Part shown: positions 1 through 32,184 of the stretch, in pieces
How positions within the stretch are numbered: the stretch's first letter is position 1
How the letters are laid out: every line of letters starts with the position of its first letter
DNA from: Klebsormidium nitens
Lineage: Eukaryota; Plantae; Klebsormidiophyceae
Assembly: GCA_000708835.1 (NCBI GenBank)
Contig: DF237591.1
Span: 1-48,103 of the forward strand
Length of the DNA stretch: 48,103 nt
Direction: 5' to 3'
Notes under the pieces: model-generated
What the model saw: only the letters and a program-made list of their open reading frames with translations
The model's database searches: none
What the model was told of the DNA's origin: nothing
Program-made: the position numbers and the translations under genes

Positions 1-461
1 TTGCCCCTGACATTGCCGTAACCCTTTGTCAGGTCCGTCTGGACATTGAAGCTTTGAATTTGTCAGAGCCTGTGTGTAACAGCAGATAGAGTCCAGTTAG
101 CTCACTAGGCGTCTGTCCGGAAGAGGGAATCTCGGAAGGACATTCGCAGCTGGCAAGCCCAGGGGAAGAGTACCCACCCCCTGCGTTCGGAGTAGATAAG
201 ACCCTAAGTAGTTATACAGTAGACAACCATAGCTACAGGTGACAGTTATTGTCAGTCCGCATCATCCCTTCCAGTGTCTGTCGGAAGGTCAAAGGAAAGA
301 CAATTACTAGAAAGTACTCCCTGCTGGCAGCCTTACTAAAAGCCTGCAGTAGGATCCGATCGCATTTACTAGCTTGGATAAACAAGCTAAGGCAGACAGT
401 CTGCCAAAGTCCAGTCAGTGGACCATTTAGTTTGGACATCCGATTGAAACAAAAAGCATCC

Positions 462-3269
462 ATGTCCAACTCAGATTCTGAAAAAGGATACCGTCTCCGA
501 AGAGACCTTCAGAATCCTTACGCCCAAAGTTCTGCTTACAGGACCGAAGGGCCAAGGCTACCCCTTGTCCAGTGGTCCAACCGGAGGCCCAGAAGTACAC
601 GAGGTGAGACATCCACCGTCACGCAGGCCTCCACCATATCGGAAGGCCTAGACACCGCGGACTCCCAAACTACCGCCACTTTCACAATGGCGCTAAAGGA
701 GCTTGACTTGTTTAGTCAAAAGTTCACGGGAGAACCCAAATCCTCTATCACTTTGGACAACTTGCGGTCTACTTACGCCGCATGGGAAGCCACTCATAAG
801 TTGCAAACCGGTTTTGATAGGTTGACCACCACCGACAAATTCCACGTAATTATGTCTAAAACCGGTGGCGCAGCTCATGATACTTGTCTTACATTGCTAA
901 CCGAGAAGGAAGAAGAGTTAGCTAGGCACAATGAGACATTGCAATCAAATTATCTTAGGAATAAAGCAACCGCACAACAAGCCATCACGGCTTGGGATGC
1001 GCAAACGGTTGAAGAGAGGGGAACTAATGCTAGACCAACTTTACCACTTGAATCTCCTACGGTCACTAACATTTTAGGAGAACCTGTCACTGAACTTTGG
1101 GCTCGACTCTTGCAGGCGTACCCTAAGGACTCGGCGGCGAAGATTCAAGCATATGGAGATTTCAAGGTTGAAGATAATGAGTCTATTACGACAGCTAGTC
1201 AACGTATGTCTAAGTTAGCATTAGATTTAAAACAACCCCAAACGCAAGCGGCTGAGAAGCTACTCAACGCATTGCCATGGAGTATACAGTCCAAGTTAAG
1301 AACCAAGTTACAATTTCAATATGAAGATATTAGTACATGGACAGTAGAGTTAATAAGGTTTGAGGCTGAAAAGCTTGAGAAGATAATTGACCAAGAACGA
1401 TTGTTGAATCCTAAGATTATTAATAATAATAGTTCTACTGGTACCACCCATCCCAAGAATGACACTAGGCCTAAGACTAGAAGGGTTACAAGATGTACTA
1501 CTTGTGGACGATTAGGGCATTCGGCCCATAATTGTAGGGTAACTACTAATAAAGTGAGCGCCAAAGCCGCGCAAAACACTCCAATGACATTTCAACCCGG
1601 CCCTTGTTTTCGATGTGGTCAAATCGGACATCAAGCCGCACAATGCCCGAGTAAACCAATGGCCAATGGGCCCATCAATCAACGCATCCTCGGCAAGCCA
1701 TGGTGCACACATCATCGGCTTAATACTCATGACTCATCACAATGTGTTCATTTGCATCCGGAATTAGCCAACCGGCCACACAATCCAACCACTCGAAGTT
1801 CCGCCGCAACGCATAGTCGAAGGAACACTCGAGGGTTGAAAGATAGCAATCTAAAGAAAGAGCTATGGAAAGAATACGAACAACGTCATCAAATCTCAAA
1901 TGCATACTCATCTCGAGGATCAAGTCCCGCAAATTCTAAGGAGATTGCCTCCGAAAACCCTTTACCAACTCATGTCAAGAATGACCGAGCACGGGAAATT
2001 GCAAAACAAGATAAAGAAGAGAAATTTGAATTTGACATGGAACTCACCGAAAATAAGTTGCATGATCAAGCTCAAGCCAAAGCCGCAAGGCGCCAAAAGG
2101 CACAAAATAATTTGCCTACCCCAAAGCCCGCCACCGTCACTAAGAAGCGAGAACGCAAACGAGTGGAAAAGAAATATTCCCGCAGACGCACTGGAACGCA
2201 ATTTCTAAGGCGCAACCCTGACATGCCATTAAGTTTCCGACCAACTGAGGAAATTGAGAAATTCCGTTCCAATGCGAGGGGGGGAGAAGGGAGTACAATC
2301 GATTATTCTGAGAAGTCTGAAACTTTTCGATCCTTGGAAATAGCAAAAGCGGAAGCGCCGCAATTTTTATATCATATACCTAAGGACCAACTTAGAACCG
2401 ATGCCCAACGAGCAAAGGATGAGGCGGAACAACACAAACGAAGCATAAAGATGACTAAAGAACTAGAAGAATTGGATAAACTACCCCCAATCATAACAAA
2501 TAAATACCATGAAAATTATGAATATTGGAAGGACCCGGCTGACCCAAAATGGATCGGAAGTCCACGCACACCACCCGCAGATCCAAAATCAAACAGCTAC
2601 AAAAACCCTCATCCGGATTTCCAAGCTGTGCTGAAGAAGGATCCGCGTGGCTATGATTTTGGTTTTCAGTCTCTATCTCCAGAAGCACAGAGCACTGAAA
2701 GAGCCAAACTGGCAGCCATGACACCCAGACCTACTGGATCCAGTTCAACAAACCAGTCTAGTTCGGATGATGACCCGGCAGACTCCGTGACTGCCAGCCC
2801 ATCCAACCTCACTAAACAGGTGTCCAGTGCCACTGGCACTGCCTCAGCTGACCCTTCTGGAGATCCAGAGAGTCAGGAGCCTCTGCCTGACCAGCATCAG
2901 TCAGAGAGGGCAGCTCGAGCAAGCTTGGCTTGCTTATGCTCGAGCATGCACCATTGTCACCTTGACAACCTAGAAGCTGACAAACTAGCACACAAGACTC
3001 GTGACAATCCTGCATTAGGCTTGCGCGTCGACAATATTGTCGACCCACAGCCACACACTTGCCCAAACGAAGGATCTCTTCACATGGAGCATCCTTATCC
3101 ATGCCGACTAGGACAGGAACCGCCAGCCCTGCAGCCAGGCAATCTTCCACAGTCTTCCATTTTGGAAGACCATACCAATACTGCAGCCACTTTCTTGCTC
3201 AAATTGTCCACACAGGAAGCATCCCCCCCCAGCCAACAGCTTGTCCTCTCGCCCCTGCGCAGCCGTACC
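462..3269 (+). CDS. gag: Gag region with nucleocapsid zinc knuckles and a long low-complexity tail
   Basis: CTTCGRLGHSAHNC (1494-1535) and CFRCGQIGHQAAQC (1605-1646) are CX2CX4HX4C knuckles. CTHHRLNTHDSSQC (1704-1745) is a CX2HX4HX4C variant. Likely ATG at 462 within ORF 249-4160. Confidence 0.85.
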
Positions 3270-4811
3270 ATGGCATCTGAGGAGCACCAGCGGGACCCAG
3301 CTGTGGGGGGCGGGCGCCCCCAGGTTTTTGCGCAGACAGAAGGAGGGAGGCAGCCGAGCGCGCAGCCGCAGCAGACTGGCCAGCAGCAGAATGGCCAGCC
3401 GCAGCAGCATGTCCAGCGGGACCCGCCCGCGCCTAAGCCTTTCCCAGGAGGTAGGCAGCCCGGCTTAGCCGCTTTGGCCGCATCTGCATTCTATCCGCCG
3501 CTTAATGCAGAGCAGCTAGAGACTTTGGAGACTGGTTTTGGACCGCTTTACAACAGCCTGGAAGATAGACCGCTGTCAGAGTTCGGCAGCAGTTTGCCTC
3601 CCCTGTCTTTCTTCTCCGAAATCGAACAGCTGGCAGCGACAATCACGTCAGATTTGCCAAAAGACGACGACGTCCCTGAGCTAGAGGACCCAGTCGAGCC
3701 AGAAGGTGCGTGGGAGGAGGAGAACGTAGACATGTCTCAGAACCACCGCCGGTTTGTGCCAGATTTTGGCAGAGCCGAGTCTTCTTCTTCGTCGGATGGT
3801 CAGTCAGATGATCCATCCTATCAGCCGTCAGACCAGGAAACTAGTGAGGGCGAGTCTGCGGAGTCGGCAGCGGAAGAGCTGGACAGCCCAGAGACGTCAG
3901 ACCTGTCGCCTCTGGACCTCCAGGATAACCCAAACCTTTCCCCCTCGTCTGCAGACCGCGTGACCCTCCCCCAGACCGTTCCCCCATCGTCGAAAACCTG
4001 CGTCGGCTGTGCCAGCGGCAGCCCCGCTACGACCCGAACCACTCTGAAGTGGGTTCGGACAATGACATCCTGCACCCCTGGTCCTCCACCCACATCATCA
4101 ACGACCCCCAAGACTACCCCTGCTTCTGGGATGACGTCCCCGGGGACGAGCAGCGGCTGATCGGCGACGTGGTCTTCGTCGTCCAGCGCCGCGTCCCCAC
4201 CCAGGGCTCCGAGAAGCACGCTGGCAAGGTGGACCGCAAGCTCATTGCAATCCAGCGCAACTTCTTCGTCATGGGCGACCGGGAGGCCGCCCAACGCTGC
4301 GTCAGGTACATCCGGACAGCTGACCGCCTGGAGGCTGAGTTCCGGTGCCGCCGCGAGGAGAGGGAGCCTGCCCCGGCCCCCAAGCGCCCCAAGGGCGGCC
4401 TCTTCACGATCCTCAGCAGCCTCGACACCCGGATGGCCAACGTCGAGCAGCGCCTGCCGGACCTCAAGGGAGCCGGCCCCTCATCACCGCCCCAGCCCAG
4501 CCCTTCATTCGCCTAGGGCCAGCCGTAGCCGGCTGCCCCTGCGAGCCCCACGGGACTTGCCGCCCCCACGGACGGGCCGCAGTCCCCTAGGCGCAGCCCC
4601 CGCGCCACGACTACCCAGGTGGCCGCCGCCCTGGCCATGCTAGCAACGGCCCCCACCGCCGCAATCCTGCCGACGTCCACCGCGGACCGAGCCCCCGCAG
4701 TGCCGCCGCGCCAGGCTGCCTCCACGACCCCTGAACCCGGCCCCTGAACCCGGCGGGAGCACGAGCGAGCCTGACCAGCCTGCACGATCTGTCAGCGCCG
4801 CCAGCGGCAAC
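3270..4811 (+). other. GC-rich coding module of unknown function within the polyprotein
   Basis: Abrupt switch to G/C-ending codons. After the C-run frameshift it reads IVENLRRLCQRQPRYDPNHSEVGSDNDILHPW...DRLEAEFRCRRE. No recognisable family. Confidence 0.5.
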
Positions 4812-5539
4812 ATGGTAAGTCCATGCCCGGAATTACGTCAGCTGGAAGCTTCCAAAGACACTTGTTCTGAGCAAAACCCAACTGCCCACAGCGCAAAATC
4901 ATCTCGAGAACAGGATTTGGATTACACTACTACCCTCGTAGGTCCGATAACGTCAAAAACCGACAAAGAAACCCAGTTAACCACTGCCCAGGTTCGGGCT
5001 GTGGGCACTGTCTTAGACATTACGGATAGTGAAGAGTTTGAGTTTCACTGGACCTCCGCACACAACTTACCCCAGGAGTTTCTGGAGAAGTTAGAATATG
5101 GGTTGTCCGTTCTGGTTAAGTCAAAGTGGCTTTTGGAACCAGAACCAATGGTTTTTCAGTTTCTGAAACCAGAGCCAGGCACTGAACTTACTGAAATTTT
5201 TAAGAACGCCTGGCAGTCTGTAGCTCTGTTTATGCGGCTCTGTCTGGCGTCTCAATTTTTACACGCCACCGCGTCAGGCGTATACAGACATTATCAGTGG
5301 TGCGAAATTAAACAACCCAGTGCCGTCAGACACAGGGTTTACGCACCTCCGTTGGCCCTCTGTGACCTGCCCATCCAGCAGGCCACCTCAGCCCGTCAAC
5401 ACTGTAAGTCATACAGTCAATTCGTTAGTCCAGTAGGACGTCTGCGCTTAAATCAACTGGCCCTGATGGACCACGCAGACATGGCAACAGGTTTCCACCA
5501 CGCCCCTCGAATCGACAATTCTGGACCAACGCCAGCTTT

Positions 5540-5900
5540 CTTAATTAACGGCGTTGCCTTGGAATGGCTAACAATAGACACTGGCTGTGAAAGCGTAATA
5601 ATATCCAACTGGACAGCCAAAAAGCTAGGCATCGCTCCAGAAATGCGTCAACGAAAAGCAATCAGTCTTATTACAGCGGATGCTGTCACTACAGCACCCG
5701 TTGATCGTACATGGGACACAATCGAAATCGCAATTAATCGACACACGTGTGCGTCTACGACGGTCCAGGTCAAACTAACAATTGTTCCGTCGCAGACCCG
5801 GGAGACCCTCATCGGCATGAGCGTCATCGGCAGGATTGGCTTGACACCAAATCCGTACAACCAAACTTTGACCTATTATCCGAAATGGTGGGAAGAGGGA
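5540..5900 (+). CDS. Retropepsin-type aspartic protease domain
   Basis: LTIDTGCESVIIS with catalytic DTG at 5577-5585, and a downstream LIGMSVI motif. Confidence 0.85.
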
Positions 5901-6323
5901 TCCCCCACCGCGGAGCTGCCGTCCATCTTTAATGTGGACTTGGTCAATAATTGCTTGCTTGCCGCAACCAGCTCGCGCATTAACCACGTCACTCTTGCTT
6001 ACGCAGGTCGAGTGAGTGCAGCAGCCGCCCCCGGACAGCCAGCAGATATCGGGCGCAACGCCCCCAGGCCCCCGCCGCCGTTTGAACGGCTTTGTACAGG
6101 TCCTGTAGTAGCGCCGCAGTCGGCGCAGGAGGAGAGAGCAGTTCGGCTACAGTTGGAATTTAGAGACCAGCTAGCCACACAGAGTGTCATAGCTAGTTTT
6201 CAGCGGACTATCCGTAGCCTTACAGAGCAGCCGCCTCCGGCTATACTTTTGGCCTCTAGATATGGATCCCCATTGGATTCGAACTTTGTGGATATCCACG
6301 AACAAACGGCTGTAAATAGTTCA

Positions 6324-7313
6324 GGCATAGTGGTGCTAGAACTATGTTCTCGATTGTGCGCAACAACAGAAGCACTTGTTCGCAGCGGTGTAAAAATTTG
6401 CAAAGTGTATGCATGCGAAATTGACAGCCTCAGCCGTGAAGTGGCTCAACAAAGATTGACCACTCTTGTTAAGTTGTTTCCACACCTCATTACATCCGAA
6501 GCAATAGCTACATGCCACAACACACTACCACATGACGTGTCGGCTATAACCGAACAACACATAACTACACTCGAGCCAGTGGACATGGTAGTAGCCGGAT
6601 TCCCATGCCAGGGATTTTCATCCGCGGCCACTAAGCCGCTTGGATTGCGGGACACCCGCACGGCATTGTTTTACACATGCACATAAATAGTACGATTAAT
6701 ATACCGTAATCATGGTCCATGCATATGGCTCTTCGAAAACGTTGACGCAACGGATCATCGCGACCCACAAGTCGCACAAGAATATAATCATGTAGTCAAG
6801 GGAATATTAGGCCCAGGAGTGGCCTTTGATGCAGTGGCCGTAGGATCATATGCACACCGCAATAGGCGATTTTGGACTAATGGTATACCACTAGCCTTGT
6901 TGGATAACATGGTGCAGCATACATTCCAAAACCTACCCACTCAAACAGTGTGCGACATAATTGAAGAGCACCATGAAGCTCAATTAGCCGCGCATGCATC
7001 AGTCCCAGGGGATTACGCAGTGAACGAAGTCGGCAAACCGCTACGAGCTTTTGCCACATTCGTCACAGTGAAGGGATCACATGCCTACCGAGATAATGGG
7101 CACAGCTTGCTAATCAACACAGACACTGGGAACCTGGAAGAACCCAATGCAAACGAAAGGGAAGCCGCCATGGGATTCATGGTCGGCACAACTGCACATG
7201 ACGCAGTTACAGAGGCCGAACGCAGGCGAATGTTAGGAGGAACCATGGATATGTTTCAAATTAAATCCCTAATCGGAGCTATCATGGTCTTTCAGCATGC
7301 CTTCTTCTTAAAT
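6324..7313 (+). pseudogene. C5 cytosine DNA methyltransferase domain, DNMT3-like, interrupted by TAA at 6684
   Basis: Degenerate motif I (VLELCSRLC), motif II (YACEID), motif IV (VVAGFPCQGFS, catalytic Cys 6606-6608), motif VI (WLFENV, 6735-6743), motif VIII (AHRNRRFWTN, compare DNMT3 AHRARYFWGN) and a motif X-like ERRRMLG. Confidence 0.9.
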
Positions 7314-7899
7314 TGACGGCGCGCTGAGTCACAACTAGCTAAAATGAGAGACACTAGTGTGACTCGCCTAGCAATCCTGAGCAATATGCCTACAACTCAC
7401 CTCATTTCGCCCCGAGAATTATATCATTTAGCAATAATCAATCACAGGTCAATAATGTCCCACCCCGACTTCCGTAGCAGAGTGCATAGCGAACGGCCAG
7501 GTTGGTATGTTCCCTATGCAAGGGGGGGGGGAGACCAAATCCACTTCGCCAACTCTTACCTGAACACAAATTCCAATTCAGATAAGCAGATAGGCACCTC
7601 AATTAGTTTCGACCAAGCTAATTTAAGTAAAGACAGCCCTGACCATCCCCTCAGCAGACAAGAAGCCAAACTTCAACTGAGACGCGCAGGAAAGGGCAGC
7701 GAGCGCTCGCCCGGCGAGCACATAAATCACGTTAGTGGTTCTAAGGATCAGCCGAGAGACGGCAGATCAGCCGGACTCAATTCAAAGAGTCCCGGCGAGC
7801 AACCAAAGGAAGCTGCCAAGCAGACAAGTCCAACGGCAGGACCTGCAAAAGACAAAGGTTTAGTTGTTAACCCTGCAAAAACAAACGACGAGGAATGGA

Positions 7900-8700
7900 G
7901 CTGGCCTATAGGAGATTCGCTGACTGAAATACAACAAGCACAATTAACAGAGCTCCTAGACAGTTTTAAAGACATCTTTGCCTTCAACATGCAAGAGATG
8001 ACTACCATTCTTGGAGTGGAATTCGAAATTCCAGTCAGTGCCGAGACACCAATCTTCAAACATCAATACCGGTTAGCGCAGTCAGAAAAGGAAGACCTAG
8101 CGCAACAAGTGGCAGAGCGACTTAAGAATGGCCTCATCAGACCGTCAACCTCACAATGGGCTTCCCCCATTACTATGCCACCCAAGAAGGACGAAAACGG
8201 AGACTGGACGCAGCGAAGAGCTTGCGGAGACTACCGTGGCCTCAACCGGGTTAGTGTCACTGACCACTATCAAATACCAACACCAGAAGAAATATTCGAC
8301 GTCATAGGCGATGCTAAAGTGTTCACTACCCTGGATTTTCGCCAAGGATACAATCAGATACGGATTGCAGAAGAAGATCGCTGCAAGACCGCATTCTGGG
8401 GAGCAGATGGGTTGTACGAATGGTTGGTCATGCCATTTGGACTAAAGAATGCACCGGCCTTCTTTCAGAAGGTTATGGACCAAACCCTCCGCGCTGAAAG
8501 GGCTTTTTGCCGCTGCTACATTGATGATTTAATAGTGTTTAGCAGAACTTTCGAATAACACCTGGCCCACCTGAAACAAGTATTTCAACGACTCAGAGAT
8601 AGAGGAGTCAAGTGCCATCCTAAAAAGATGCGCGCCGCCGTACCCGACGTAGGATATTTGGGACACCTGATTGTCCCTAAAGGAACCGCAGTGCAGAAAA
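7900..8700 (+). pseudogene. Reverse transcriptase domain (stop at 8556)
   Basis: IRPSTSQWASP, RACGDYRGLN, FTTLDFRQGYNQI, MPFGLKNAPAFFQ, YIDD (8517-8528), GYLGH. Confidence 0.97.
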
Positions 8701-8939
8701 AGAAGGTGGAAGCAATCTTAAGAATCCCACCTCCTCCAGACGTGAGTGCACTAAGAGCCTTTCTGGGAACTGCCGGATACTACCGGAAGTTCGTAAAGAA
8801 TTACAGCAAGATAGCAAACCCACTAAATCACTTGCTGCAGGAAGGAGTATCATATGACTGGAGGACTGAATGCCAACGAGCGTTTGATGCGCTGAAGACG
8901 CATTTGACAAAAGCACCCATCCTTCGCCGGCCCGACTTC

Positions 8940-9330
8940 AAGCGCGAATTCGAGCTGCACACCGACTGGAGTGCACAGGGGCTTGGCGCAGTGCTCATCC
9001 AACGAGATGATGAGGGCAACGAGTATGTCGTTGCCTATGCCAGTCGCAGCTGTAACAAGACGGAACGCAATTACTCCAGCTACCACGGTGAGTGCCTAGC
9101 TGCGGTTTGGGCTGTTTCCCACTTCAGGTATTACTTGTACGGCCGCAAGTGTACTCTGATTACAGACCATGAACCGTTAGAATGGTTAATGACCAATGAG
9201 AAGCTAAGAGGAATGCACGCTGGCAGATGGGCTAACATTCTTCAGGAGTACGACATCTACATCAAACACAGGTCATTAGTTAACAACCTAGATGCAGATG
9301 GATTGTCTCGCAACCCGCTTCCATCAGAGG
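8940..9330 (+). CDS. RNase H domain of pol
   Basis: LHTDWS..GLGAVL, YASRS, NYSSYHGECLAAVWAV, LITDHEPL, DADGLSR. Confidence 0.93.
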
Positions 9331-10279
9331 TAGATTCTACCGGTGCCAAAATGGACCATGTCCAACCGAACGAATTGAGTGAAAAACGCACCTCAGAGCG
9401 ATCCAGTGCCACTAGAAGTCAGAACGACACTGAAGCTTCGAATAGCCTGCTGACTATTCAGAAGGAGGGGATTGCTAATGAAAGCAAGCCGCCCACAGTT
9501 GACTCGCCCAGCGTCTTAGCTACAATGCTAGCTAGAACTGTAAGTCAACAATGGACTGCTAAGTCGACTGAAAGTGGCAGCCAGGGACGACCAATCCAGA
9601 GAGAAATCTATCCTTTCCATCATGCATCCCGACATGTGCATGCAGGCTCAAAGAGCAGAGACCTGAACCAGGGAACAACAAGCCAAGTGGACTCCTATTC
9701 CGTGCTGAGACTGTCGACGGGGGACCTGCCGACTACAGGACACGTCATGAAGCAAAGGGCATGCGCTTCAAGGCAACTTCGCCCTAGGGTTACAAGTGCT
9801 GACATCTCAACCATAACACATGCCAACCAACCGCACGAAGCACAAGATTGGAATACTGCCCAAGATCTTCATGTGAATCAGAAAATTGCGATTCCATCTG
9901 GCGAATCTTCCGCGCAACCTCCTCTGCAAGTCAATTCTGCCCCAGACCAATCCCAATCAGAATTAGACTTGGTAACTGAGTCAGTTACCGGCGTCACGGG
10001 CACAGACGCAATTGAATCACACTTCCAAGGGACAGATAAAGATGGTGACCTCCTAGGTGACGACCCGGAATTGGCTCCCATTCCCGATATCTGGTCTGAC
10101 CACAACACAATACAATATCTGCAGGATAATTGTGTCTACCCAAGCCATGCAGGCCCCAAGGAACGGGACCGGATACGGTGACGGGCACGAAGCTATAAGT
10201 TTGAGAACAATGCTCTCATGAAGCTGACCAACGATGGCATCTTAAAACGAGTGCCGGCGCCTGACGCCAGGGCAGCATT

Positions 10280-11160
10280 AGTGGCTGATATTCATAAGCA
10301 ATTCGGTCACTTCGGAAAAAAAAGAACTTACTCCTTGTTAGAACCCACACACTGGTGGGCAGGAATGCACGAACAAATTGCGCAATTAGTGGCTAGCTGT
10401 CAAGTATGTGACCGCGTAAAAACCAGTTTCAACATCAAGGACTCAGTACTCAAGCCCCTTCCAATCATGGGCTTAGGGTACCGATGGAGTTGCGACCTAG
10501 CAGGGCCGCTTCCCCCATCAGCAACTGGATATCATTACATCATGGTAATGATAGAACACTTCTCAAAGTGGTTGGAGCTAGTTCCACTCCCCGACAATAC
10601 CTCTGAGGAAACATAAAAGGCTTTCCTTCAGGTCTGCACCAATTTTGGTGCGCCCGCGGAAGTACTTACTGATCAAAGACAAGAATTCCAAGGAGAATTT
10701 GACACCTTATGTAAGGAACTTCTCATCGATCACCGTGAAACTTCACGCGATCACCCTCAAGCCGACGGCCTCGCTGAACGCGCGGTTCAGACCACTAAGC
10801 GAGCCGTACGAAAGTACGTATTAACACATGCAGTTGATACCTGGGATGAGTGGATCCCTTGGATTGCCATGGGGTACCGCATGTCAAAGCAAACGTCGTT
10901 AGGAGACTACTCACCTTACTTCCTAATGTTTGGCAGACATCCCGTGGTAGGAGCAACCCTCCGAGAAATGGTCAACACACCTGTCGACCTGGATAACCCT
11001 GACGTGTGGGAGGAAATCATTACAGCACGTTCAGAGGAGTTTAAAAAGGCTATCCCTATAGCCTTCAGCAACCTGCAAGCAGCGCAACACCGGGACACTT
11101 TATGGTACGCCAAAACACGTACTGGCAATTGGAGCCCTAAAGTTAAGAGGTTTGACTTGT
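10280..11160 (+). pseudogene. DDE integrase with HHCC zinc-binding domain (stop at 10614)
   Basis: IHKQFGHFG...CQVC. Catalytic triad in WSCDLAGP, VLTDQ and HPQADGLAERAV. PYFLMFGRHP follows. Confidence 0.95.
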
Positions 11161-11386
11161 AGGAGACTTGGTCTACCTGCGTCGCAGACAAGTTGACACA
11201 CTCGATGTCAATGTAGGCCGCATCATCCTGAGAATTAAGGAGATCCTACCTAATGGAGCGCTCAGATTGCAGGGCAGAGATGGCAAAACGGTTAAGGATC
11301 ACGTTGAGAATTGTGCTCCGTGTCACAATCCAGCCATAGACCTCACCATGGACACCACACTTTCCGGATACGATGAGGACTGGGCT

Positions 11387-11523
11387 TGTCAAATTTGCAA
11401 GAAGACAAACCGACCTGCCAAAATGCTTATTTGTGACTACTGTAGCGAAGGCTACCACATGGACTGTCTGGACCCACCTATCCTGAGACTCCCAAAGGGA
11501 GATTGGTTTTGCCCATGCGGTGC
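11387..11523 (+). CDS. PHD finger at the C-terminus of integrase
   Basis: CQICKKTNRPAKMLICDYCSEGYHMDCLDPPILRLPKGDWFCP(R)C matches the C4HC3 pattern. The last Cys pair reads CPC as sequenced, or CPRC followed by AL-stop (11530-11532) if a small frameshift is assumed. Confidence 0.9.
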
Positions 11524-11585
11524 GCTTTATAAGCTCCAAGCAAAAGGGGCAAAGTCTAACCTGTGTTTTCACTCATGCAGGAAGC

Positions 11586-12124
11586 ATGGCATCCAGCTCA
11601 GCACAACAACCAGAGGCCAACACGTCACAACAGATTCAGAGTTCAGGATGGGGCCCACCCCCAACTCCTGGCCTAGAAGACTTACCACCTTCCTACACAC
11701 CGAATATATATTATGATCATCTCAAAAAGTTAGCCATTCATGAGTGGGACGAATATTGGTGGCCCACTAAGAAGGTCCAACTCGCCTGGCGAATGGGACA
11801 ATGGCATAACCGAATTAAAAAACTAGTGCTCTCATTGACCAGATGCATAGAGAATTACTTGCACTAGAACGAGAAAACGATCTTGATCGCACCCCGATCA
11901 ACGTGCGCCAGTACTTACTTGCCAAGTGGCCGCGCACTGAAATAAACGAAGTATTGGAAGAGTGCACCGCACATTTCCCACAGGGAACTGTCACCACCAG
12001 ACGTATGAGTACGCCGCGCAGAGACGCAATGTTGGAATTCATCGAGCGACAAGTCGATGTAGGCCAGAGTACCCATACGGCGGACTGCACTTACTTCTTC
12101 ATGCAACGATACGGCAATATTTGA
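11586..12124 (+). pseudogene. Accessory ORF of the retroelement (~179 aa, unknown function), split at an A6 run
   Basis: ATG 11586 (MASSSAQQP...) joins ORF 11843-12124 if one A is added to the run at 11817-11822 (...RIKKTSALIDQMHRELLALERE...). Confidence 0.5.
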
Positions 12125-12342
12125 GTAGACATGTGATTAATCGAACCGCGCCCGCGCTCCGCGATCTTGGGTCAGAGCTGATGCCATACTTGTATGGTGG
12201 CAAGGGACCACTCTTCCGAACATTTTAGCTTAGCATATTAACAAAATTGCGGATTTTAAAAGCATGGCACAAATTCACTCTTCATATCCCTGACTGCCTC
12301 AATCTTAAAGCCCTAAACCTCGTCGGGACGACTCGGTGGCTT

Positions 12343-12352
12343 AGGGGGGGGA
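12343..12352 (+). other. Polypurine tract of the retrotransposon
   Basis: AGGGGGGGGA followed by TAA and TG at the start of the repeat, downstream of pol. Confidence 0.8.
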
Positions 12353-12355
12353 TAA

Positions 12356-12509
12356 TGAATGACTATGAATTCCATACATGCCGTCTTATTTACTCAGCAT
12401 ATACCGCCAATTGCTCGTATCATGTACTTTTTAACGTTTAGCCGATCCATATGTCTCATCACTTCATGTAACCGACGTCAATCGAACGCCGACGTTATAT
12501 CGCACGACA
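12356..12509 (+). repeat. 154-bp TG..CA direct repeat, copy 1 (start of the putative 3' LTR)
   Basis: Matches 13548-13701 except for two transitions, and follows the PPT. Confidence 0.9.
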
Positions 12510-13547
12510 GCTGTCATGCCACAACGCGTCGCTGCCATAACGCGTCGCTTGGCCAACCAGCATGAGACATGTGGAATGTCGTAACGTACTTAGATAAGTC
12601 AGTTAGCTTAAACCGACCGCGGTTAGCGCACCTAACCATAACCTCGTAGGCTGGTCACGGATTGGCTATTGATCAGTCACATCATACTGGACATCCATTG
12701 GTGCAACCCGTTATCCACAATCCAATTATTGCAACCAAGGTTCTGGGATTGAATCCGGGTACGTTTTCGAACGTTCCCTGGAGACGTAACCAGTCGCTAA
12801 CCGGTTATGTCACCGCAAGTCACCAGGTTATGATACCGGCCGTCGCGTACCCTATAGCATGTGGCGCAGCCAGCTGCAGCATGCAAGTGGATGTCCAAAC
12901 TCATTATGCGAATCCACGGGTACTTAAGCCAATGGCTCAGCCATTTTCCAACTTGACTTTCATTCAAGTTAACTATCCATCGCCACCGGACACCCGTGTC
13001 CACCCAGCATCCAAGCGCCTTGAGCGTTCAACCCAGCACCCGAGTACCTCGAGTACTCAACAAGTGACCAGCGCCAGCAGTACCGGCGACAGAGGAGACA
13101 ACACCAACGTACTAGCAACACCAACAACACCACCGGAGCAGGAGAACGACAACAACAGTAGCAGTACCAAACACGGCAGTAACTTAATCGGCCCTATAGC
13201 CTTCAGCGTTACCTTCTTGTTTCACATCACCATGTCCCATGCCTCCGGCGACGCCATCATCCAGTCAGTAAGTGTCAACTGCTTGTACTTGTCTTGTGTT
13301 CATGCTTGAGTCCCTTTGGACATCCAGAATCCTGAATGCGAGCCACCGCCACCCTGGGTAGCGAACCTCTCGGACGGACAATGGGGATGCTGTGGGGATT
13401 ACCTTGAATGTTAGCACAAGCCACCTCCAATGCAGCTTGTTCATAACGTGCCATATACTAGCCATACTTTTCTGAGCGCCAGCTTAAGAAACCATCGTGT
13501 CCTTTCAATCAATCCTTAACCAAGGGAAGGGGCCCGACCCCGGATAA

Positions 13548-13701
13548 TGAATGACTATGAATTCCATACATGCCGTCTTATTTACTCAGCATATACCGCC
13601 AATTGCTCGTATCATGTACTTTTTAACGCTTAGCCGATCCATATGTCTCATCACTTCATGTAACCGACGTCAATCGAACGCCGACGTTGTATCGCACGAC
13701 A
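13548..13701 (+). repeat. 154-bp TG..CA direct repeat, copy 2
   Basis: 1192 bp downstream of copy 1 and also preceded by GGATAA. Confidence 0.9.
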
Positions 13702-14486
13702 CATGCTAGGCTAGCAGCTTCTCCTAGCCCAGCGTACGGGAATCTCGACCAATCAGTGCGAAGCATATAGAGCGCTTCCGCCCGGCCGCCATACATGATT
13801 CATAAGATAAGATGAGCACCAGAAAGCATGTGAATGTTAGTATGATTGACAGCGCCACCCGTTGAAATGTGCGTGTCCGGCAGGCATATGAGATCTCTTG
13901 GCCTTGCGCCAGACAATTTTGCGCTTGCTTGCAACTTAATCAGCCTTCCAATTACGTGGGCATATATCAAGCCGGAGACGAAGCGGAGCGGCTGCACAAT
14001 ATGCCCCCAACCTTCGCAAATATTTCAGTCCAGGGGCTGTTCGTCACTTGCAGTCGGCAGTCCGCGTACCGTATCGGCTGTCTTTTCGTGGCACTCTATG
14101 TCCATTGACCAACGGCTAGCAGGGTACTTCTTTGCTGCCAATCAGCTCAAGCGCCTAGACGATTCGATTCATTCTGCCACAACGTTGTACGTCTAACCGT
14201 ACTTTGTCAAAATCTGGGAACGATAAAGCAATCTCTGCTCAATTTCGAACTACGACCACCAAGTGCGGGCCTCGAAACGAGCCCGAAAAGCTCCACATTA
14301 GTGTGGAATCAACCCCTGCTTTACAGTAGGTAAGAGTACCGCTTCCTTAGACCCCCTCGTAACCCAATACGTACACTAATTTGCCCGTAGAGAAGCTTTG
14401 GCAACCCGTTTAATCACCAGGCCGTTCAACTGTTTCTATACATCTAGAGTCGCTTCTTTGAAGCTGCGGACTTCAAAGGCCCATCC

Positions 14487-17400: not shown

Positions 17401-19665
17401 ATGGTGCCGTCAATCTTAGTAGAACTTCAAAGCAGGGAGGAGCATCACGCATCTTCCAATCCAGTTGAGTGCTTATGCAACATCAATTCAAAGCCTGACA
17501 ACACCTGAAGACTCGCCAGTAACCAACGTACGCGCTTGGACGTAAGGACGTAGGCGGAGAATCCGCTGTTCTGGCCGTTCAGGGTACTAGAAGTAGCAGG
17601 ATTCGTAAAGTCGCGGTTTTATTTCAAGTCGATACTGAGCCAACGAGGATCGTTTTTGGAAAAAGCACCTGCCACGCAGATTGAGAAACGGACTCGATCC
17701 GGAAACTTTGCAAGCTTGCCAGAGAAGAAGATGGGATACTCTCAAGAAGCTACTCACCAGTGCAGCATCTTTGGTTGTCGCTGCCCCATTTTGCAGGGGG
17801 CCAGCCCCCTGGTGACTGTCACTGAGACCGTCCGATTCCTCCCCCTCTGCTGCCTCCGTCTCAGCTGGTGGCGGGACCCGCCTTGCTGGTGCATGGGCGG
17901 ATAACACATGGACTGTCAAGGCGTACATGTCTCCCCGTTTCACCTCGTACGGACAGCCGGACTTCGGACACCTGGCAACAGCCTCTGGACACACCTGGTC
18001 CAAGCAGTACACGGAAGTGAGTTGATATCACGTTGGAAGTATGTTGATACGAAAAACGAACTCGACACGCCTAGCTCTCAAACTTTGATTGGAGGAAGTC
18101 CTCTACTCGTACAGCCAATCTTCGCGATCGATCTGAATCCGAGTTGATCCCCAAGTCAAGTACTTTGCATACACCAGTCAGCGCAAATTGGAAACCTGTC
18201 CGTCAGTACGAAGCAACTTAGAAACTGTCTGTAGAACAAGTCAACTTAAGGGCTTGAACGAGTTACACCATATGGAATGTGAAGGCTCAGCAACAAAATC
18301 CTTACACAGCGATCTAAAAGCAGTCATTTTTGGAGGAACAAGACTATCAACATTCTTAATCGTAAAGGCGAAACCACATCTAGTCTGATTTGGAGTCGGT
18401 ATATTCTGGAATCCAGAAAGGAAGCCACACGTTCATGTGACACTCCATACTTGGCTCAGATGCAGAAAGATAGGAGGCAGAAAGATAGGAGAGTTTGTTG
18501 CAAGTTACCACTGACCAACAACAGGCTCAGAAACTTCTAATCCAAACCCTCATGCAGCTGCTTGCAGAACTCAATAGTAATTTTCATACTAGAAAATAAC
18601 CAGGTTGTGATTTTGAGAAGGATGTTGTATGCTCTGAACGTGAGGTCACCTTGAAGTGTTCTTCCCCATTGGCGAATAGAAACGCTTCCTTGCACAGAGG
18701 GCACTTTGGCTGGCACTCCGGCCGATGACTGCTCTCCACCAGGCATGCGGCCACCTTGACGTCACATCGAGGACAGGGCACCAGACGGTACTTACAAACT
18801 TTGCTATGCTCCTCTCTATCGCACACTGCAATTTTTTCCTCACAGAGAGGGCATGAAACCAGACGATACTCGCACTCATCCTCGTGCAGATTCAATTTCA
18901 GCGCCGGCAATGCAGCGTTGCACCCTAGGTGGCCACACTGCACGGGGCGGTACTCGCACTGCTCTTCATGCAACTGCACCTCCCGCGCTTTCATAATCTG
19001 CTGACAGTGCTGACACTCCTTGGGGCGGTAACCACACTGTTCTTCGTGCGCTTGCCGCTCGCCTCCGCTCCCCAAGTGGGGACATCCATGTTCCGCCTGC
19101 CAAGAGAAGTGCGATTTGAAAGGGACCTCCATAGCAAGATCAGAAGCTCCCACATCGTCATGGTCTGGGGTCTTGCGCAGTGATGTGATATTTGGCAAAG
19201 GGTCTAAGCCTTGAGACTCGAGAACCCTTGACAGCAAGCGGCAGACTTCACCTAGAAAGATGGATTGGCGGTCGCCGTTAGCTCATCATTTGAATCCGGT
19301 GGAATGGGGCACTGGTCAACAACAAGCTGTACTCAACCTTTCTGGGCGCCAGACATGGAGAGTCGATTGCCTGTCACTGAATATGAATCTGCATGTGCTT
19401 GGATTCTTTGATTTTACTCTCTATACTCCTGAATATCTGTGAAATGGAAATCAGTTGAGCAACAAATCTGCCGTTTGAGAAGGTTGTTGGGGTGTACTAC
19501 AGCAATTCTTTGAGAAAAACAGTACTGCTTTCACAGTTGATGCACTTGGCACATGGCACCACAGATTTCTTGGAGCAACTCACCAGCACCCAGCTTCCGG
19601 TAATAATGTCTTGTTTCACGACTGCGTAGCGGCAGATGCCGAGGGCTAAGGGAGCCATGGTGATC
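14487..19665 (-). CDS. Multi-exon gene: TRAF-type Zn-finger repeats, AT-hook and divergent bromodomain; 5' end unresolved
   Basis: Phase-consistent GT-AG exons 19665-19584, 19251-18650, 17994-17758, 17170-16577, 16166-15463, 15001-14791 and 14531-14487. Repeated HEEQC.YRP..C..C fingers, KPRGRPP AT-hook, and ILGSILDGM..PLFR..APDG..K/PMNLIRIRNKI..Y.LQDLSDDMQLI resembling bromodomain helices. Confidence 0.75.
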
Positions 19666-23723: not shown

Positions 23724-26700
23724 TCAAGGTGCGGGACTGGGGTACCGCCTGTGAATTTTATCAATCCCTGACATAACGTCTTCAGATAAGGGAGGCTGCT
23801 CCGTCGCAATGGTGAGCAACTCCTGAAGCTGCTCCGGCGACGTGGCTCCAATCACAGCGCTCGCAACCAGCGGATGGCGCAATACAAATCCTGCAAGGGC
23901 GGGCCTTGTGCCACGTGTCAGCGCGCACCCTCGTCAATTTGATGTCCGCAATATAGTTGAGGATGCAGGAGTCACGTGTCCGTCCAGATTGCGCCATCAA
24001 GCGATTGCGCTGCTTGGTTGGCCAAACACGTTGGCTAGGTAGTTCAAACCGGTATGCTTGATTTACGAGTGAAACGAAGCGTTTGCTAATCGCATTTTCT
24101 GGCTGCCCATGGACCGCTTTGGATACGTTTCCAAAGGTTTATGAAAGAAGCGAAAGTGAAGGTCAAAAGCACCAGATAAGCTGGTGCGGGCTGAAATCCT
24201 GCTCAGGTACGACGGTAAGCAACCAGTCACTCCCAGAAAGAGAAAGTTACTTGCTGCGAAAGGCCGCCTTCCCAACTTGACCCATGGATCGAGCACAAAC
24301 AGGATCATCGACCCTGTTAAGAGTCTCGAAAGACCTGTCCTGCAATCCCAACAGTGGCAGCATGCTGTTGGAGTTCACGTTGAGAGCGGCACCACGATGT
24401 GCGTTGGCCGTGGTATCGAGCCGTGGTTTAAGCTAACCCAAGTCTTGCCCGACCACTCTTGCGAGAGAGTATGGGGGTCTGTGTTCATCGACGAAGGTTT
24501 GACGCAGGCTTTACGCGGAACCATCCGCCCGAAACCCCCAGAAATTCAAAACAATCTCAAGCTGGCACCGAAGGCTTACCACCAATGTCAAACAAAAGCC
24601 TCCGCTTTGGAAGCCGACGGAGTTACGGAACCCCCTCGTACCTTTACCCTTGGAGACCCTTGAATGGAACCAGCTAAAACTGGTGGACAGGGCTGTGCGT
24701 GGCTTAAATGGCCCCAAAACGGCGGCCCCATCAGACCGCTGAGGCTGAGTCTGCGCTCGATAACAGTGCAAACGATTTTGTGTGGTTTCTCTTTCCTCCC
24801 TCAGCTTGACAGGTTAGGTGACACTAGGTGACACTGGGTGACAACTAGGTGACACCTCCAGTCGAAGATGGTGGCAAGCTTAAAAGGAAGGTGCTGAGGA
24901 GCTTTCGCAGTAAGTTCGGTGGTCTCCGTCGACGCCAAAGAAAATGATTGCGAGCGCGAAAAAACGGAAACCCAAACAAGAGAGGCCCGTCAAAAAGGCA
25001 CCCACCGAGCGCCAGGCCGGTCAGCGACAGACCGCTTTGCTCCGCGAGCTTTGCATATGCGCGCACTGCCGCCACCAGGTTCGGCTTTGTGAAGCTGTAC
25101 CGGCTCTCGGCTTCCGCGTACCGACCTGCGATATCCGAATGCGAAGATTGTTTCCGTTGGATTCATGGTCGTTCAGGTTCCTTCTGGCCTCTTAGTCGAA
25201 GAAGTTCGCGATCTCAGAATTAAGAACATCTGTAGATCAGATCGACTCTGGATTGGCCAAGGTGGCGCCTCAACCCAGTGCTCCGCGGACATGCTCATTT
25301 GCTGCGCATCCGGAACCCGACGGGAGGCGTTATATGCGTTTTTCGTCAGAACGCGCACGTGCTTAGGACGAGAAAAGCTTCTACATGCTCAGGATGAGTC
25401 CTTCTCTCAGCTAGGTAATCCCCGTCGCATTCCGAAGTCACTCCCTGCTGATAAGTACATGCCCCGTAGACACGTCAAGAGGACTGCTCAGCGCCACGAA
25501 ACGGATGATTGACTTGAAGCAGCAGCAAGTCAACATCTTTTCCTAGCAGGAACATCTCTAATAGAAAATACGGTCCTGTAGGAGCGGCGCTTCGCCTTCT
25601 TTCGTTGAAGCCATCTTCGAACCGCACCATCGAAAAGCTCGGTTCCGGGCGTAAAACATGTCAGTCAAGGAAATCGGCGAGCGGCGTTTACTCACACCGG
25701 TATTTGTTGAGCCGCGCTCCCGGGGGGCCACCGTCCCCCGTCAGGTACTTCCCCGTCAAGTGACCCATCGCTAGGGGGCTGTACGCGAGAAGGCTGACTC
25801 TGCACGGGCGGGTTCAGAGCTTTCACGGTCTAGGCATTTTCAGAGGCTTAGTGGCAAAGCCCAATGTTGATAGAGGACAGATTTCCACCGTTGGGGACAG
25901 ACACACAACTCAGAGTAGCTTTAGAGGCTTAGTGACAAAGCCCAATGTTGATGGATGACAGATTCCGCGGTTAGGGACAGACACACAACTCGGAGAAGCA
26001 GCCTGAGTTTCAAGCGAGGCTTGTCGGAGTGTCCGGTGGCCTGATGAAGGTCTCCGCAGACTGACGATGCGAGACTTGAGGTTCGAAAGTGGAGTCAAAA
26101 GCGCCAATTCTTGGTCTTCCAAAGTGCACTGAAGCCCGTACGTAAAGAAAAAGCCCGACTGCTCAACAGAGGGTAACGAGTCTTCCTTAACGCCGCTGTT
26201 GGCGGCAGACCTTTGACACCAAATTCAACGAAGCAAGGGCAGTCGACTGGACTTCCGACATAATTGTGCAGTTGCAATCGGACCTACTCACTTCTCCTGA
26301 TGACAGATCTCGGCCACTCCGCTGTCGAACGTCCGACAGAGGAGGTGGTAAGCGTTCTGCACGGAGGGACGACGCACGAACCTCTTGTGACGAGGTGAGC
26401 CGGGCAACTGAAGCATGCAACCTGTCTCGGACGCTTGGAGGCGGAAGAGAAGCTAAAAAACCATTTGATCCAAGAGGTTCGAAGGACTTCACACGCTATC
26501 TTTCATGTTCATCGCCGTCAATGCTCGCTGTGCAAATCTGTCCGACTGGCCACCGAAAGGTGAACGATGCAGTTGCGTATGCATCCTCGGCGATCAACCG
26601 CTTATCGGTAAATACTCAAGTACGCTACTCTTTGTGCGGAGTACGAAGGAGACCGCTGGTCACCCAACGCAAAGCGAACCACCCTTGTGGAATCTATTTC

Positions 26701-30473: not shown

Positions 30474-30849
30474 TGATTGCAACCACGGCCCCCAATTGTG
30501 AATGGCGGGCACAGCGTTGCATTCTTCCCCAGAGACGCCTGCACCTTGCTGCCACGACTTTCTTTCTCAGATTTGCAGCCGGTAAACAATTACCGGCTGC
30601 CACAGTCCCATCGTCCTGGCAGTGATTGGTCCCCGGGACAGGGAGTGAGTACCCGGGTGACAAAGGGGCCTGTTCTGTGAAAAACACGCTAAATCGAGGA
30701 AGTCGAGCTCAGAAACAAATGACCAGCCTGAGCAAATGCGCAGGAAGTTTGCTTCAACTTTCGGTGCTTCAACTTTTCGTTGAAGCACAAGCAAATGCGC
30801 AGGAAGTTGAAGCACTGTGCAGCCTGCAGCTGAGCACACTTCATTCAAC

Positions 30850-32184
30850 ATGGCGGCTAGGGAACCCCACATTGCGCTCCCCCACCTGGGGCCTGAGCTA
30901 CTGAAACGCATTTTCTTCAAGGTGGGCCCCAGCCCCAAGGACGTAGCCACGTTGGCCTTCGTCTGCAAAGCCTGGCGGGACGTTCTGCACGAATTCACAT
31001 GGGAAGCGCTCTGCTTGGAAGCGGCGCCGGCGCTCTGTGAGAAGGCGGGGTTTGGGGGTGGAAAGACGCCCCCTGGAAAGTGGGGCTGGAGGGGGCTATA
31101 TAAGCTTTTGACTTACTGTCCTGGGATCCAGACTCCAGTCCCTGACGATCGGGATGAACTGAAGTCTCCAGAGGATTTGTGCTTGTTTGTGGGGCATGTA
31201 GAGGCTGAGAACCAGCTAGGCTTCTTGGCTGGGCCGAGGTTGAAGAAAGACCTGAGGCTGAAGGCGGCATGCCGGAAGGACACTTTGTTTGTCACCCGGC
31301 CGTGTGACAATCCACACCTTGATAAGACTGACGAGTTCTCAGAAGGCTTTCCTAGTGCTGCGCGGGGTCTGGTCAAGGATTTCCCGAACTCAGCATTTGC
31401 CAGGAAATCGGGCGCGGCCGCCTATCTGAACCAGAAGCTGGGGCAAGCAGAGGGCACTGCATCGGATGTGGGGAATGCGGGAACCAGGAAAGAGAGGCGA
31501 GACGGTGGCATGGGAACAACCTGTGTCTACTGTGACGGGCAGCTGTTTGAGCTCCCGCCTGAAGACTTCTTCGACAACGACTGGCGGAGTGAGAGGGAAG
31601 GGGACGATTACGAAATGGACGAAGATGGTAATGACGACTCCGGGTACAACATTTCAGGGTATGTCTGTGAGAGTGGGCATCTGATCCTGGGGGTCTTTGG
31701 CTGTCTTCACTTCGCTGGGGGCTTTGTTAAGAAGATTGATGGGTCCGGGGAGGATCTAGATATAGACGCAAGCGATGCGGTGAGGACGGTTTGCAAGACT
31801 TTTGAGCCGGTCTTGAAGAAGGAATTTAAAAGGGATGGTATCGAGTTGGTGGCTGCGCTCAACGTGGTGGCAATTGGGGACAGATTGAGGCCGTTGGTTC
31901 AAAAGGTGGAGCGGATGCTTTCAACTGATTTCGGTGCTGAAGTCTACTCCATTGCTGAGCTTCGCACGAAGCTTGCTTTGACCCGCGTGATGACCGATTG
32001 GTTCCAAGATCCTATTGAAAAGGTGTACGTTTTGTTGCGAGAGTTCTCACTGGAGGCATCAGAAACGCTGATGAAGCACCTGGTTTGGGGCACGCCGAGC
32101 TTTGCTGATGTCATGAAGCTTGTTGAGCAAGAGCTGAGGTTGATCGCCCAAAAGCAGAAGAAGAGGCATGGTAGGAAACCATGA
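30850..32184 (+). CDS. EID1-like F-box protein, single exon
   Basis: N-terminal F-box (LGPELLKRIFF..PKDVATLAFVCKAWR), W...C..AP..GW..LYKLLTYCPG, CRKDTLFVTRPC, RGLVKDF, CVYC and YVCESGH match the EID1/EDL layout as I recall it. ORF 30817-32184, first ATG 30850. Confidence 0.78.
   Translation: MAAREPHIALPHLGPELLKRIFFKVGPSPKDVATLAFVCKAWRDVLHEFTWEALCLEAAPALCEKAGFGGGKTPPGKWGWRGLYKLLTYCPGIQTPVPDDRDELKSPEDLCLFVGHVEAENQLGFLAGPRLKKDLRLKAACRKDTLFVTRPCDNPHLDKTDEFSEGFPSAARGLVKDFPNSAFARKSGAAAYLNQKLGQAEGTASDVGNAGTRKERRDGGMGTTCVYCDGQLFELPPEDFFDNDWRSEREGDDYEMDEDGNDDSGYNISGYVCESGHLILGVFGCLHFAGGFVKKIDGSGEDLDIDASDAVRTVCKTFEPVLKKEFKRDGIELVAALNVVAIGDRLRPLVQKVERMLSTDFGAEVYSIAELRTKLALTRVMTDWFQDPIEKVYVLLREFSLEASETLMKHLVWGTPSFADVMKLVEQELRLIAQKQKKRHGRKP

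Follow-up and report, generated by a model that had tools for sequence, protein, structure and literature searches.

We analyzed a 48,103-nucleotide stretch of the streptophyte alga Klebsormidium nitens (GenBank assembly GCA_000708835.1, contig DF237591.1; hereafter the window), whose left part (1 to ~13701, forward strand) is, judged by its domain content, one degenerate Gypsy-type retroelement of the KnitGypsy-Dnmt3 kind. Its open reading frames (ORFs) and Pfam matches give the layout Gag, protease (PR) and a DNMT3-like DNA methyltransferase (DNMT), an in-frame UGA, then reverse transcriptase (RT), RNase H and integrase (INT), with a PHD finger at the end of Pol. The finger follows the integrase beta-barrel, in the place that the chromodomain holds in chromoviruses, as the initial annotation had proposed. 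Taken as a whole, the sequence evidence is best explained by this finger serving as an integration-targeting chromatin reader, a reading that we favor with modest confidence.

The Pfam profile PF00628 matched the ORF at 11168-11716 with an E-value of 4.5e-11 (43 bits; cut-off, 24), covering ORF residues 74-116, or window positions 11387-11515, and profile positions 1-45 of 47. In the forward-strand translation the ligands are spaced C74-x2-C77-x11-C89-x2-C92-x4-H97-x2-C100-x14-C115, with 11387 opening the codon of the first Cys; seven zinc ligands keep their register. Two letters at 11516-11517 put the eighth out of place, and the last ligand pair reads C-P-C-G in the window copy, compared with C-P-x-C in 99% of 125 representative relatives, each at most ~50% identical to the others, whose alignment underlies the conservation figures given here. 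Skipping the two letters turns 11518-11532 into R-C-A-L-stop and yields the ending C-P-R-C-A-L-stop, in which Pol ends two codons past the final Cys; the TAA stop at 11530-11532 is in frame only in this reading. The proteins of the closest relatives end 8-16 residues past the finger.

Contigs of four public sequencing runs (X1, X5, X7 and X11) were aligned over 10100-13800; none of the listed runs that contain the stretch is recorded as RNA. The two letters at 11516 were left out in 66.6 of 117 depth in X1 and in the entire depth at that site in X5, X7 and X11. Because the extra letters are absent from these other copies, most other copies of the family have an intact finger, whereas that of the window copy is broken. 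Two intact metagenomic relatives, L009 and L005, matched the full PHD profile (positions 1-47). The C4HC3 finger described at the outset thus holds for the family, whose eight zinc ligands are 94-100% conserved, and fails for the window copy as assembled, in which the eighth ligand is displaced; the boundaries given for it proved exact, running from the first Cys codon to the TAA stop of the family. A chance or decayed motif was considered as the origin of the finger and was ruled out by the Pfam score and the conservation.

A HMMER scan of 1.84 billion representative proteins, with the 182-residue ORF 11168-11716 as query, returned 6908 matches, and more than 100 of the best 150 aligned to query residues 2-117, the barrel plus the PHD, in one stretch. 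Because the unit is matched in one stretch this often, the PHD observation lies far beyond chance. The integrase-barrel-plus-PHD unit occurs in more than 100 protein clusters (clustered at 50% identity), and mapping the Pol pieces of the window onto the matched proteins placed it after the H2C2 and rve domains. The residue at position His-1 is aromatic in 96% of the representatives. These alignments indicate that barrel and PHD have been kept as one unit across a large, old green-lineage Gypsy clade, chlorophytes included.

The first 60 residues of ORF 11168-11716 continue the integrase, giving the domain order H2C2, rve core, beta-barrel, linker and PHD. In an AlphaFold2 model (34 relatives), the beta-barrel at residues 20-51 was predicted with a pLDDT (predicted local distance difference test score) of ~90 and the PHD at residues 71-117 with 84-89, and the segment between them reached only ~57; in this model, the PHD is joined to the integrase barrel by a flexible linker. 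A P-C-H motif (H-V-E-N-C-A-P-C-H, window 11300-11326) lies in the region of the last barrel strand before the linker and is conserved at a level of at least 90% in 34 relatives.

The K. nitens protein GAQ92325.1 covers part of the integrase-PHD unit at 47% identity, and the nearest Atlas cluster is mostly Streptophyta. A word-indexed protein search with the PHD region of the intact relative P0158, an insensitive search that gives no taxonomic picture, returned five matches. Past the finger, 51 of the 150 relatives carry a conserved module of ~40 residues, located 50-70 residues further on. Pfam matched this module to the PTM/DIR17-like Tudor family (PF21743) in P0142 (residues 1191-1239; 32.8 bits, above the cut-off) and in P0075 (residues 543-598; 26.6 bits, just under the cut-off). 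With Pfam support in these two of the 12 relatives scanned past the PHD, the module may tentatively be called Tudor-like. The clade of the window is without it, and its proteins stop right after the PHD.

The 60 best sequence matches of the finger in the PDB were PHF12, CHD4, KMT2C/D, PHF21A (BHC80), ATXR5, KDM5A/B/D, KAT6A/B, BAZ2A/B, DPF2/3, UHRF1, AIRE, RCO1 and ORC1b, proteins that we take to be readers of the unmodified N-terminus of histone H3; no cage reader of the ING, BPTF or TAF3 type was among these 60. Superposition of the modelled finger on BAZ2A/B, ATXR5-H3, BHC80, DPF3b and MOZ gave 1.2-2.3 Å at 36-49% identity, and the same ranges describe its likeness to KDM5A PHD1, CHD4 PHD1/2 and AIRE PHD1. 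Foldseek with the two-domain model gave no match at E <= 0.001, the finger being small, and its ranking and root-mean-square deviations serve only as support for the sequence result. With the known readers of unmodified H3, the window finger also shares the motif C-L-D-P-P...P-K-G-x-W-x-C-P and the absence of an aromatic cage.

In BPTF and ING2, the residue preceding Cys1 is aromatic and His-2 is Trp, both belonging to the aromatic cage. These positions are A73 and G95 in the window copy; in the relatives, Pro or Ala precedes Cys1 and Gly occupies His-2 in 94%, in agreement with the initial remark that the finger has no obvious aromatic cage. Sequence and model support its placement in the cage-less class of PHD fingers, whose members of solved structure recognize unmodified H3 tails. 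The likeness to fingers that bind H3 unmethylated at K4 (H3K4me0), suggested at the outset, was likewise upheld by sequence and predicted fold, with PHF21A/BHC80, BAZ2A/B, ATXR5, KDM5A PHD1, CHD4, AIRE and UHRF1 as its counterparts. Some PHD fingers do read H3K4me2/me3, and the window copy has a Trp (W72) two residues before Cys1, which might suggest a finger that targets the element to active promoters; however, W72 is replaced by Leu, His or Gln in the relatives, and, given the residues at the cage positions and the lack of cage-type readers among the best PDB matches, we regard such a preference as very improbable.

Because the finger has no aromatic cage and its closest solved relatives read unmodified H3, its preferred target may well be H3 unmethylated at K4, an assignment that we hold tentatively. 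Of the 125 relatives, 88 have a Cys2-Cys3 loop of net negative charge, as in the H3K4me0 readers of the KDM5, BAZ2 and KMT2 types. Several observations weigh against this assignment. The charge of the loop is +4 in the window copy and ~-1 to +2 in its clade, so that the known readers have an acidic loop and the window subfamily a basic one; the H3 specificity of this subfamily may differ from that of the other relatives. The acidic residues before Cys1 that the initial annotation had pointed to are present (DEDWAC, residues 69-74 of the ORF) but only partly conserved, D71 being found in only 55% of relatives, and by our reading the acidic residue is offset by one position with respect to BHC80 and AIRE. 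The reader unit is not uniform either, since half of the more distant relatives have a further module past the PHD, and PHD fingers also bind non-histone partners. We infer H3K4me0 specificity with more confidence for the entire clade than for the window subfamily.

The uneven charge of the histone-contacting loop between subfamilies would also fit a finger that serves integrase multimerisation, or binds nucleic acid or a host protein, with no H3K4 readout; the UHRF1 PHD bound to PAF15 or Stella is indeed among the structural matches. We judge such a role improbable, given that, by sequence as well as by fold, the finger is closest to H3-tail readers whose structures include H3 peptides and that the position of the finger copies that of the chromoviral chromodomain. 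The post-PHD module that many relatives add, Tudor-like by Pfam in two of them, would also fit chromatin reading.

Reader-guided integration is established for chromodomains, as are transposon-borne DNMTs. We think it rather probable that the PHD acts like a chromoviral chromodomain, tethering the integrase or intasome to nucleosomes via the H3 N-terminal tail. The INT-PHD protein would dock on nucleosomes through this tail, and a preference for H3 without K4 methylation would bias insertion away from H3K4me3-marked promoters. Chromoviruses such as MAGGY have in common with the window element a chromatin reader fused past the integrase C-terminal barrel and presumed to tether the integrase to a histone mark. 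They differ in that the chromoviral reader has a chromo fold and recognizes H3K9me, whereas the window element has a zinc-binding PHD that likely recognizes the unmodified H3 tail; no Pfam chromodomain match was found in the window ORF or the intact relatives. Precedent for both chromodomain-guided integration and PHD fingers in retrotransposons is given in PMC6673714, and a preprint on chromatin evolution lists PHD-transposon fusions in numbers.

The methyltransferase of the element proved to be DNMT3-like, in line with the original idea: the DNMT of an intact relative gave 29 PDB matches, solely to DNMT3A, DNMT3B and DNMT3C (best 2.9e-8). In the window, a hidden Markov model (HMM) of the DNMT family matched the two halves of the enzyme with E-values of 1e-31 and 2e-49. 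The N-terminal half shares ORF 4812-6686 with the protease, the C-terminal half occupies 6819-7316, and an in-frame stop at 6684-6686 interrupts the enzyme, which is read in the frame of the downstream RT. Catalytic motif IV of the DNMT reads E-C-Q in L005, an intact relative (L005:7699-8772), and P-C-Q in the window.

Co-occurrence of PHD and DNMT across families, which the initial annotation had named as a check, was extensive: a DNMT is present in 33 of the 35 integrase-PHD lineages that could be judged. Two domain orders were found, PR-DNMT-RT-RNaseH-INT-PHD (type A, the order of the window; six lineages) and the commoner RT-RNaseH-DNMT-INT-PHD (type B; 27 lineages), and two lineages are without a DNMT. 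The type B count comprises 25 representatives and two proteins from the word search, all long enough to judge, with the DNMT directly upstream of the integrase. One example is the 'pol' protein of Scenedesmus sp. PABB004 (KAF8056149.1; P0101), in which Pfam finds RVT_1, RNase H, DNA_methylase (E 7e-11), integrase and PHD; P0060 and P0064 are further proteins of this type. The type B order, as read from these proteins, extends DNMT-bearing Gypsy elements to chlorophytes; the literature found mentions Gypsy-DNMT3 for streptophytes only.

A search for metagenomic loci with a 7-sequence alignment yielded 13 loci, mostly on short contigs, of which only L009 and L012 extend sufficiently upstream for the DNMT to be scored. 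The type A order is common to L001, L005, L009, L012 and L022; L005 is intact, with a Gag-PR-DNMT ORF of 1283 aa and an RT-RNaseH-INT-PHD ORF of 1074 aa, divided at the same point as the UGA of the window. Pfam, tblastn and the family HMM (E <= 1) detected no DNMT in the L002-L004 family or in the 1.6 kb upstream of the RT in L006 (L006:1-1620), both of which lineages keep RT-RNaseH-INT-PHD. The upstream ORF of the former (1664 residues, L002:4994-9988, also in L003 and L004) shows only a CCHC knuckle, with no Pfam match to a protease. L005 and L002 also contain whole elements in head-to-tail tandem on single metagenomic contigs, three copies with a period of ~8 kb in L005:1-17788 and two in L002:1-15239, which could stem from DIRS-like repeats, from intermediates in circular or concatemeric form, or from misassembly.

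The integrase tree (60 rows, unrooted) unites the type A rows with P0072, its only DNMT-less row, in one clade (Shimodaira–Hasegawa-like approximate likelihood ratio test support, 96), and type B rows fill the rest; P0065, the sister of P0072, was not scored for the DNMT. On this comparative evidence the PHD-DNMT association is real and old, in a sample that was baited with the PHD unit and covers PHD-bearing elements, and its pattern on the tree may be one of simple inheritance. The PHD appears not to need the DNMT, because two related lineages keep it without a detectable DNMT.

The association fits a coupling in which recognition of H3K4me0 by the PHD would direct or license methylation de novo at the insertion or in its surroundings: the enzyme is DNMT3-like, the finger belongs to the unmodified-H3 class, and the DNMT has stayed with the PHD integrase in 33 lineages (27 type B, 6 type A) against 2, despite its two positions in Pol (PR-DNMT-RT in the window, RNaseH-DNMT-INT in most relatives). 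However, the co-occurrence possibly reflects shared ancestry in a PHD-baited sample, and DNMT-less relatives retain the PHD. The arrangement points both ways: in type B the integrase directly follows the DNMT and a DNMT-INT-PHD protein is conceivable, whereas in the window the DNMT belongs to the Gag-PR-DNMT product, with the UGA and RT-RNaseH before INT-PHD, and the protease would separate them further. The finger is not an ADD domain, and other DNMTs carried by transposons occur alongside a chromodomain or a tyrosine recombinase, or have no reader (described in PMC5890265 and bioRxiv 10.64898/2026.05.21.726589). We consider such coupling unlikely, its best chance being in type B, whose DNMT, integrase and PHD adjoin. 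Equally, there is little probability that the DNMT3-like writer and the PHD reader of the green-algal clade form one unit, a counterpart of DNMT3-ADD encoded by a transposon, that integrates into and methylates H3K4-unmethylated chromatin. On that account, the DNMT could have moved within Pol and rarely been lost, in streptophytes as well as chlorophytes, and type B could perhaps make one DNMT-integrase-PHD protein.

Because the DNMT is separate in type A and the PHD persists without a DNMT, the PHD is most simply explained as a tether for the integrase. In type A, the DNMT would be produced in amounts similar to those of Gag, and INT-PHD would require readthrough of the UGA; the DNMT and the PHD would lie ~1400 residues apart, and the protease would split them. 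Because the DNMT is upstream of the UGA and of RT-RNaseH and does not adjoin the PHD, the two are unlikely to share one mature protein in type A, which weakens the original idea of a DNMT3-plus-ADD logic. The DNMT probably has as its likeliest job the methylation of the element's own new DNA, as PMC5890265 proposes, and direct guidance by the PHD is improbable.

DNMT3A, DNMT3B and DNMT3L offer the obvious parallel, in that their ADD domain is likewise a PHD-like, Cys-rich H3K4me0 reader alongside a DNMT3-type enzyme. The ADD is a composite of a GATA-like and a PHD-like part; it immediately precedes the catalytic domain and controls it allosterically. By contrast, the window element has a plain 47-residue PHD at the integrase C-terminus, ~1400 residues downstream of the DNMT and past a stop codon. 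Among Pfam models, ADD_DNMT3 gave no match in the window ORF or the intact relatives, in which only PF00628 and NSD-type PHD models matched. Of the proposal that the element had rebuilt a DNMT3-plus-ADD logic, the DNMT3-like enzyme and its co-inheritance with the finger stood, and the ADD part gave way to a plain PF00628 PHD.

A further parallel is REM1, which is not known to carry a DNMT. Retrotransposons with PHD fingers were reportedly described by Perez-Alegre 2005 (REM1) and by Kapitonov and Jurka 2003. PMC6673714 names CR1-like elements and REM1 of Chlamydomonas reinhardtii among PHD-bearing retrotransposons; by this citation, REM1 resembles the window element as a green-algal long terminal repeat retrotransposon encoding a PHD finger. 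The EpiLTRs (bioRxiv 10.64898/2026.05.21.726589) are retrotransposons in which a reader of chromatin likewise accompanies an enzyme that writes DNA methylation. According to that preprint they carry a DNMT4-related enzyme, a chromodomain and DAM in other lineages, whereas the window element has a DNMT3-like enzyme and a PHD.

KnitGypsy-Dnmt3 of K. nitens is described by de Mendoza et al. 2018 (PMC5890265) as a Gypsy element whose Pol includes a DNMT3-like domain free of introns and whose DIRS-like repeats follow the order A-coding-B-A-B. The window element shares with it the Gypsy RT, RNase H and integrase, the DNMT3-like domain inside Pol, the B-~1 kb-B block at the 3' end and the streptophyte-alga host; the window copy is degenerate and was matched to the published family by its described features. 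The text and supplements of PMC5890265, Fig. 4c apart, make no mention of a PHD on KnitGypsy-Dnmt3, and none was found for the family in the other literature searched.

The window copy is dead, with in-frame stops, a frameshift and the displaced last PHD ligand. The left edge of the window cuts off the 5' end of the element, and the 5' A repeat would lie in the missing part (Table 1). The 3' block contains a 160-nt direct repeat (12350-12509 and 13542-13701, 99% identical) with ~1 kb between the copies. Family read depth is higher over 12350-13701 than over the coding part and ends at ~13700, the end of the second repeat copy. Pol reads in one frame from 7344 to ~11155, interrupted by stops at 8556-8558, 10179-10181 and 10614-10616, with RT in ORF 7344-8558 and RNase H in ORF 8628-10181; the frameshift was placed at ~11153-11159 by the tblastn frames against L009 and L005 and by three-frame translation. 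The UGA-CGG at 7314-7319 is a candidate programmed readthrough site. The ratio of observed to expected CpG is ~0.8 in the element and the flanking host DNA alike and provides no usable footprint of self-methylation.

Table 1 Coordinates of the retroelement features in the window
Feature	Position	Strand	Evidence
Gag-like ORF, 1303 aa, with CCHC zinc knuckles	249..4160	+	Pfam zf-CCHC E 5.5e-8
Aspartic protease	5544..5834	+	gag-asp_proteas E 2.7e-8, residues 245-341 of ORF 4812-6686
DNMT3-like C5 cytosine methyltransferase, between protease and RT	6309..7298	+	Pfam DNA_methylase E 2.2e-7
In-frame UGA followed by CGG, between Gag-PR-DNMT and RT-RNaseH-INT-PHD	7314..7316	+	frame continues downstream
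RT and RNase H	7893..9362	+	RVT_1 E 1.2e-19, RT_RNaseH E 7e-36, tblastn of L005 ORF2
Integrase, H2C2 and rve core	10218..11159	+	Integrase_H2C2 E 2.2e-14, rve; tblastn to L009 and L005
Predicted integrase C-terminal beta-barrel (~11225-11320) and linker to PHD	11168..11386	+	AlphaFold2, 125 relatives
PHD finger (C4HC3), last Pol domain	11387..11532	+	Pfam PHD, ligand conservation, run contigs, alternative frame
3' terminal repeat block	12350..13701	+	repeat search, self-blastn, read depth

Downstream of the element, two host-like ORFs encode a Sina-type zinc finger (18584-19237, reverse strand; E 2.6e-10) and an F-box-like domain (30817-32184, forward strand; E 2.4e-5). Short tandem duplications are present at 25839-25999 (81 nt x 2, 88%) and 45881-46062 (91 nt x 2, 90%).

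The DNMT-Gypsy family (PMC5890265), reader-bearing integrases and PHD fingers in retrotransposons are already known, and because the element family has been published and retrotransposon PHD fingers are on record, the finding is less new than the initial annotation assumed. Four points are, on the sequences compared here, new with respect to the literature found: the integrase of this family ends in a PHD of the unmodified-H3 type; the PHD unit is common to a large green-lineage clade that includes chlorophytes; a DNMT accompanies the PHD in nearly all lineages, at two positions in Pol; and many relatives carry a further conserved module past the PHD. A clade that keeps a DNMT3-like enzyme together with an H3-tail reader would offer a natural experiment on the targeting of de novo methylation to chromatin, touching on whether transposons methylate themselves to hide, on the avoidance of promoters and on the repeated origin of the DNMT3/H3K4me0 logic. 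The isolated PHD measures only ~60 residues and intact natural copies exist, making direct tests by peptide binding and insertion-site mapping feasible.

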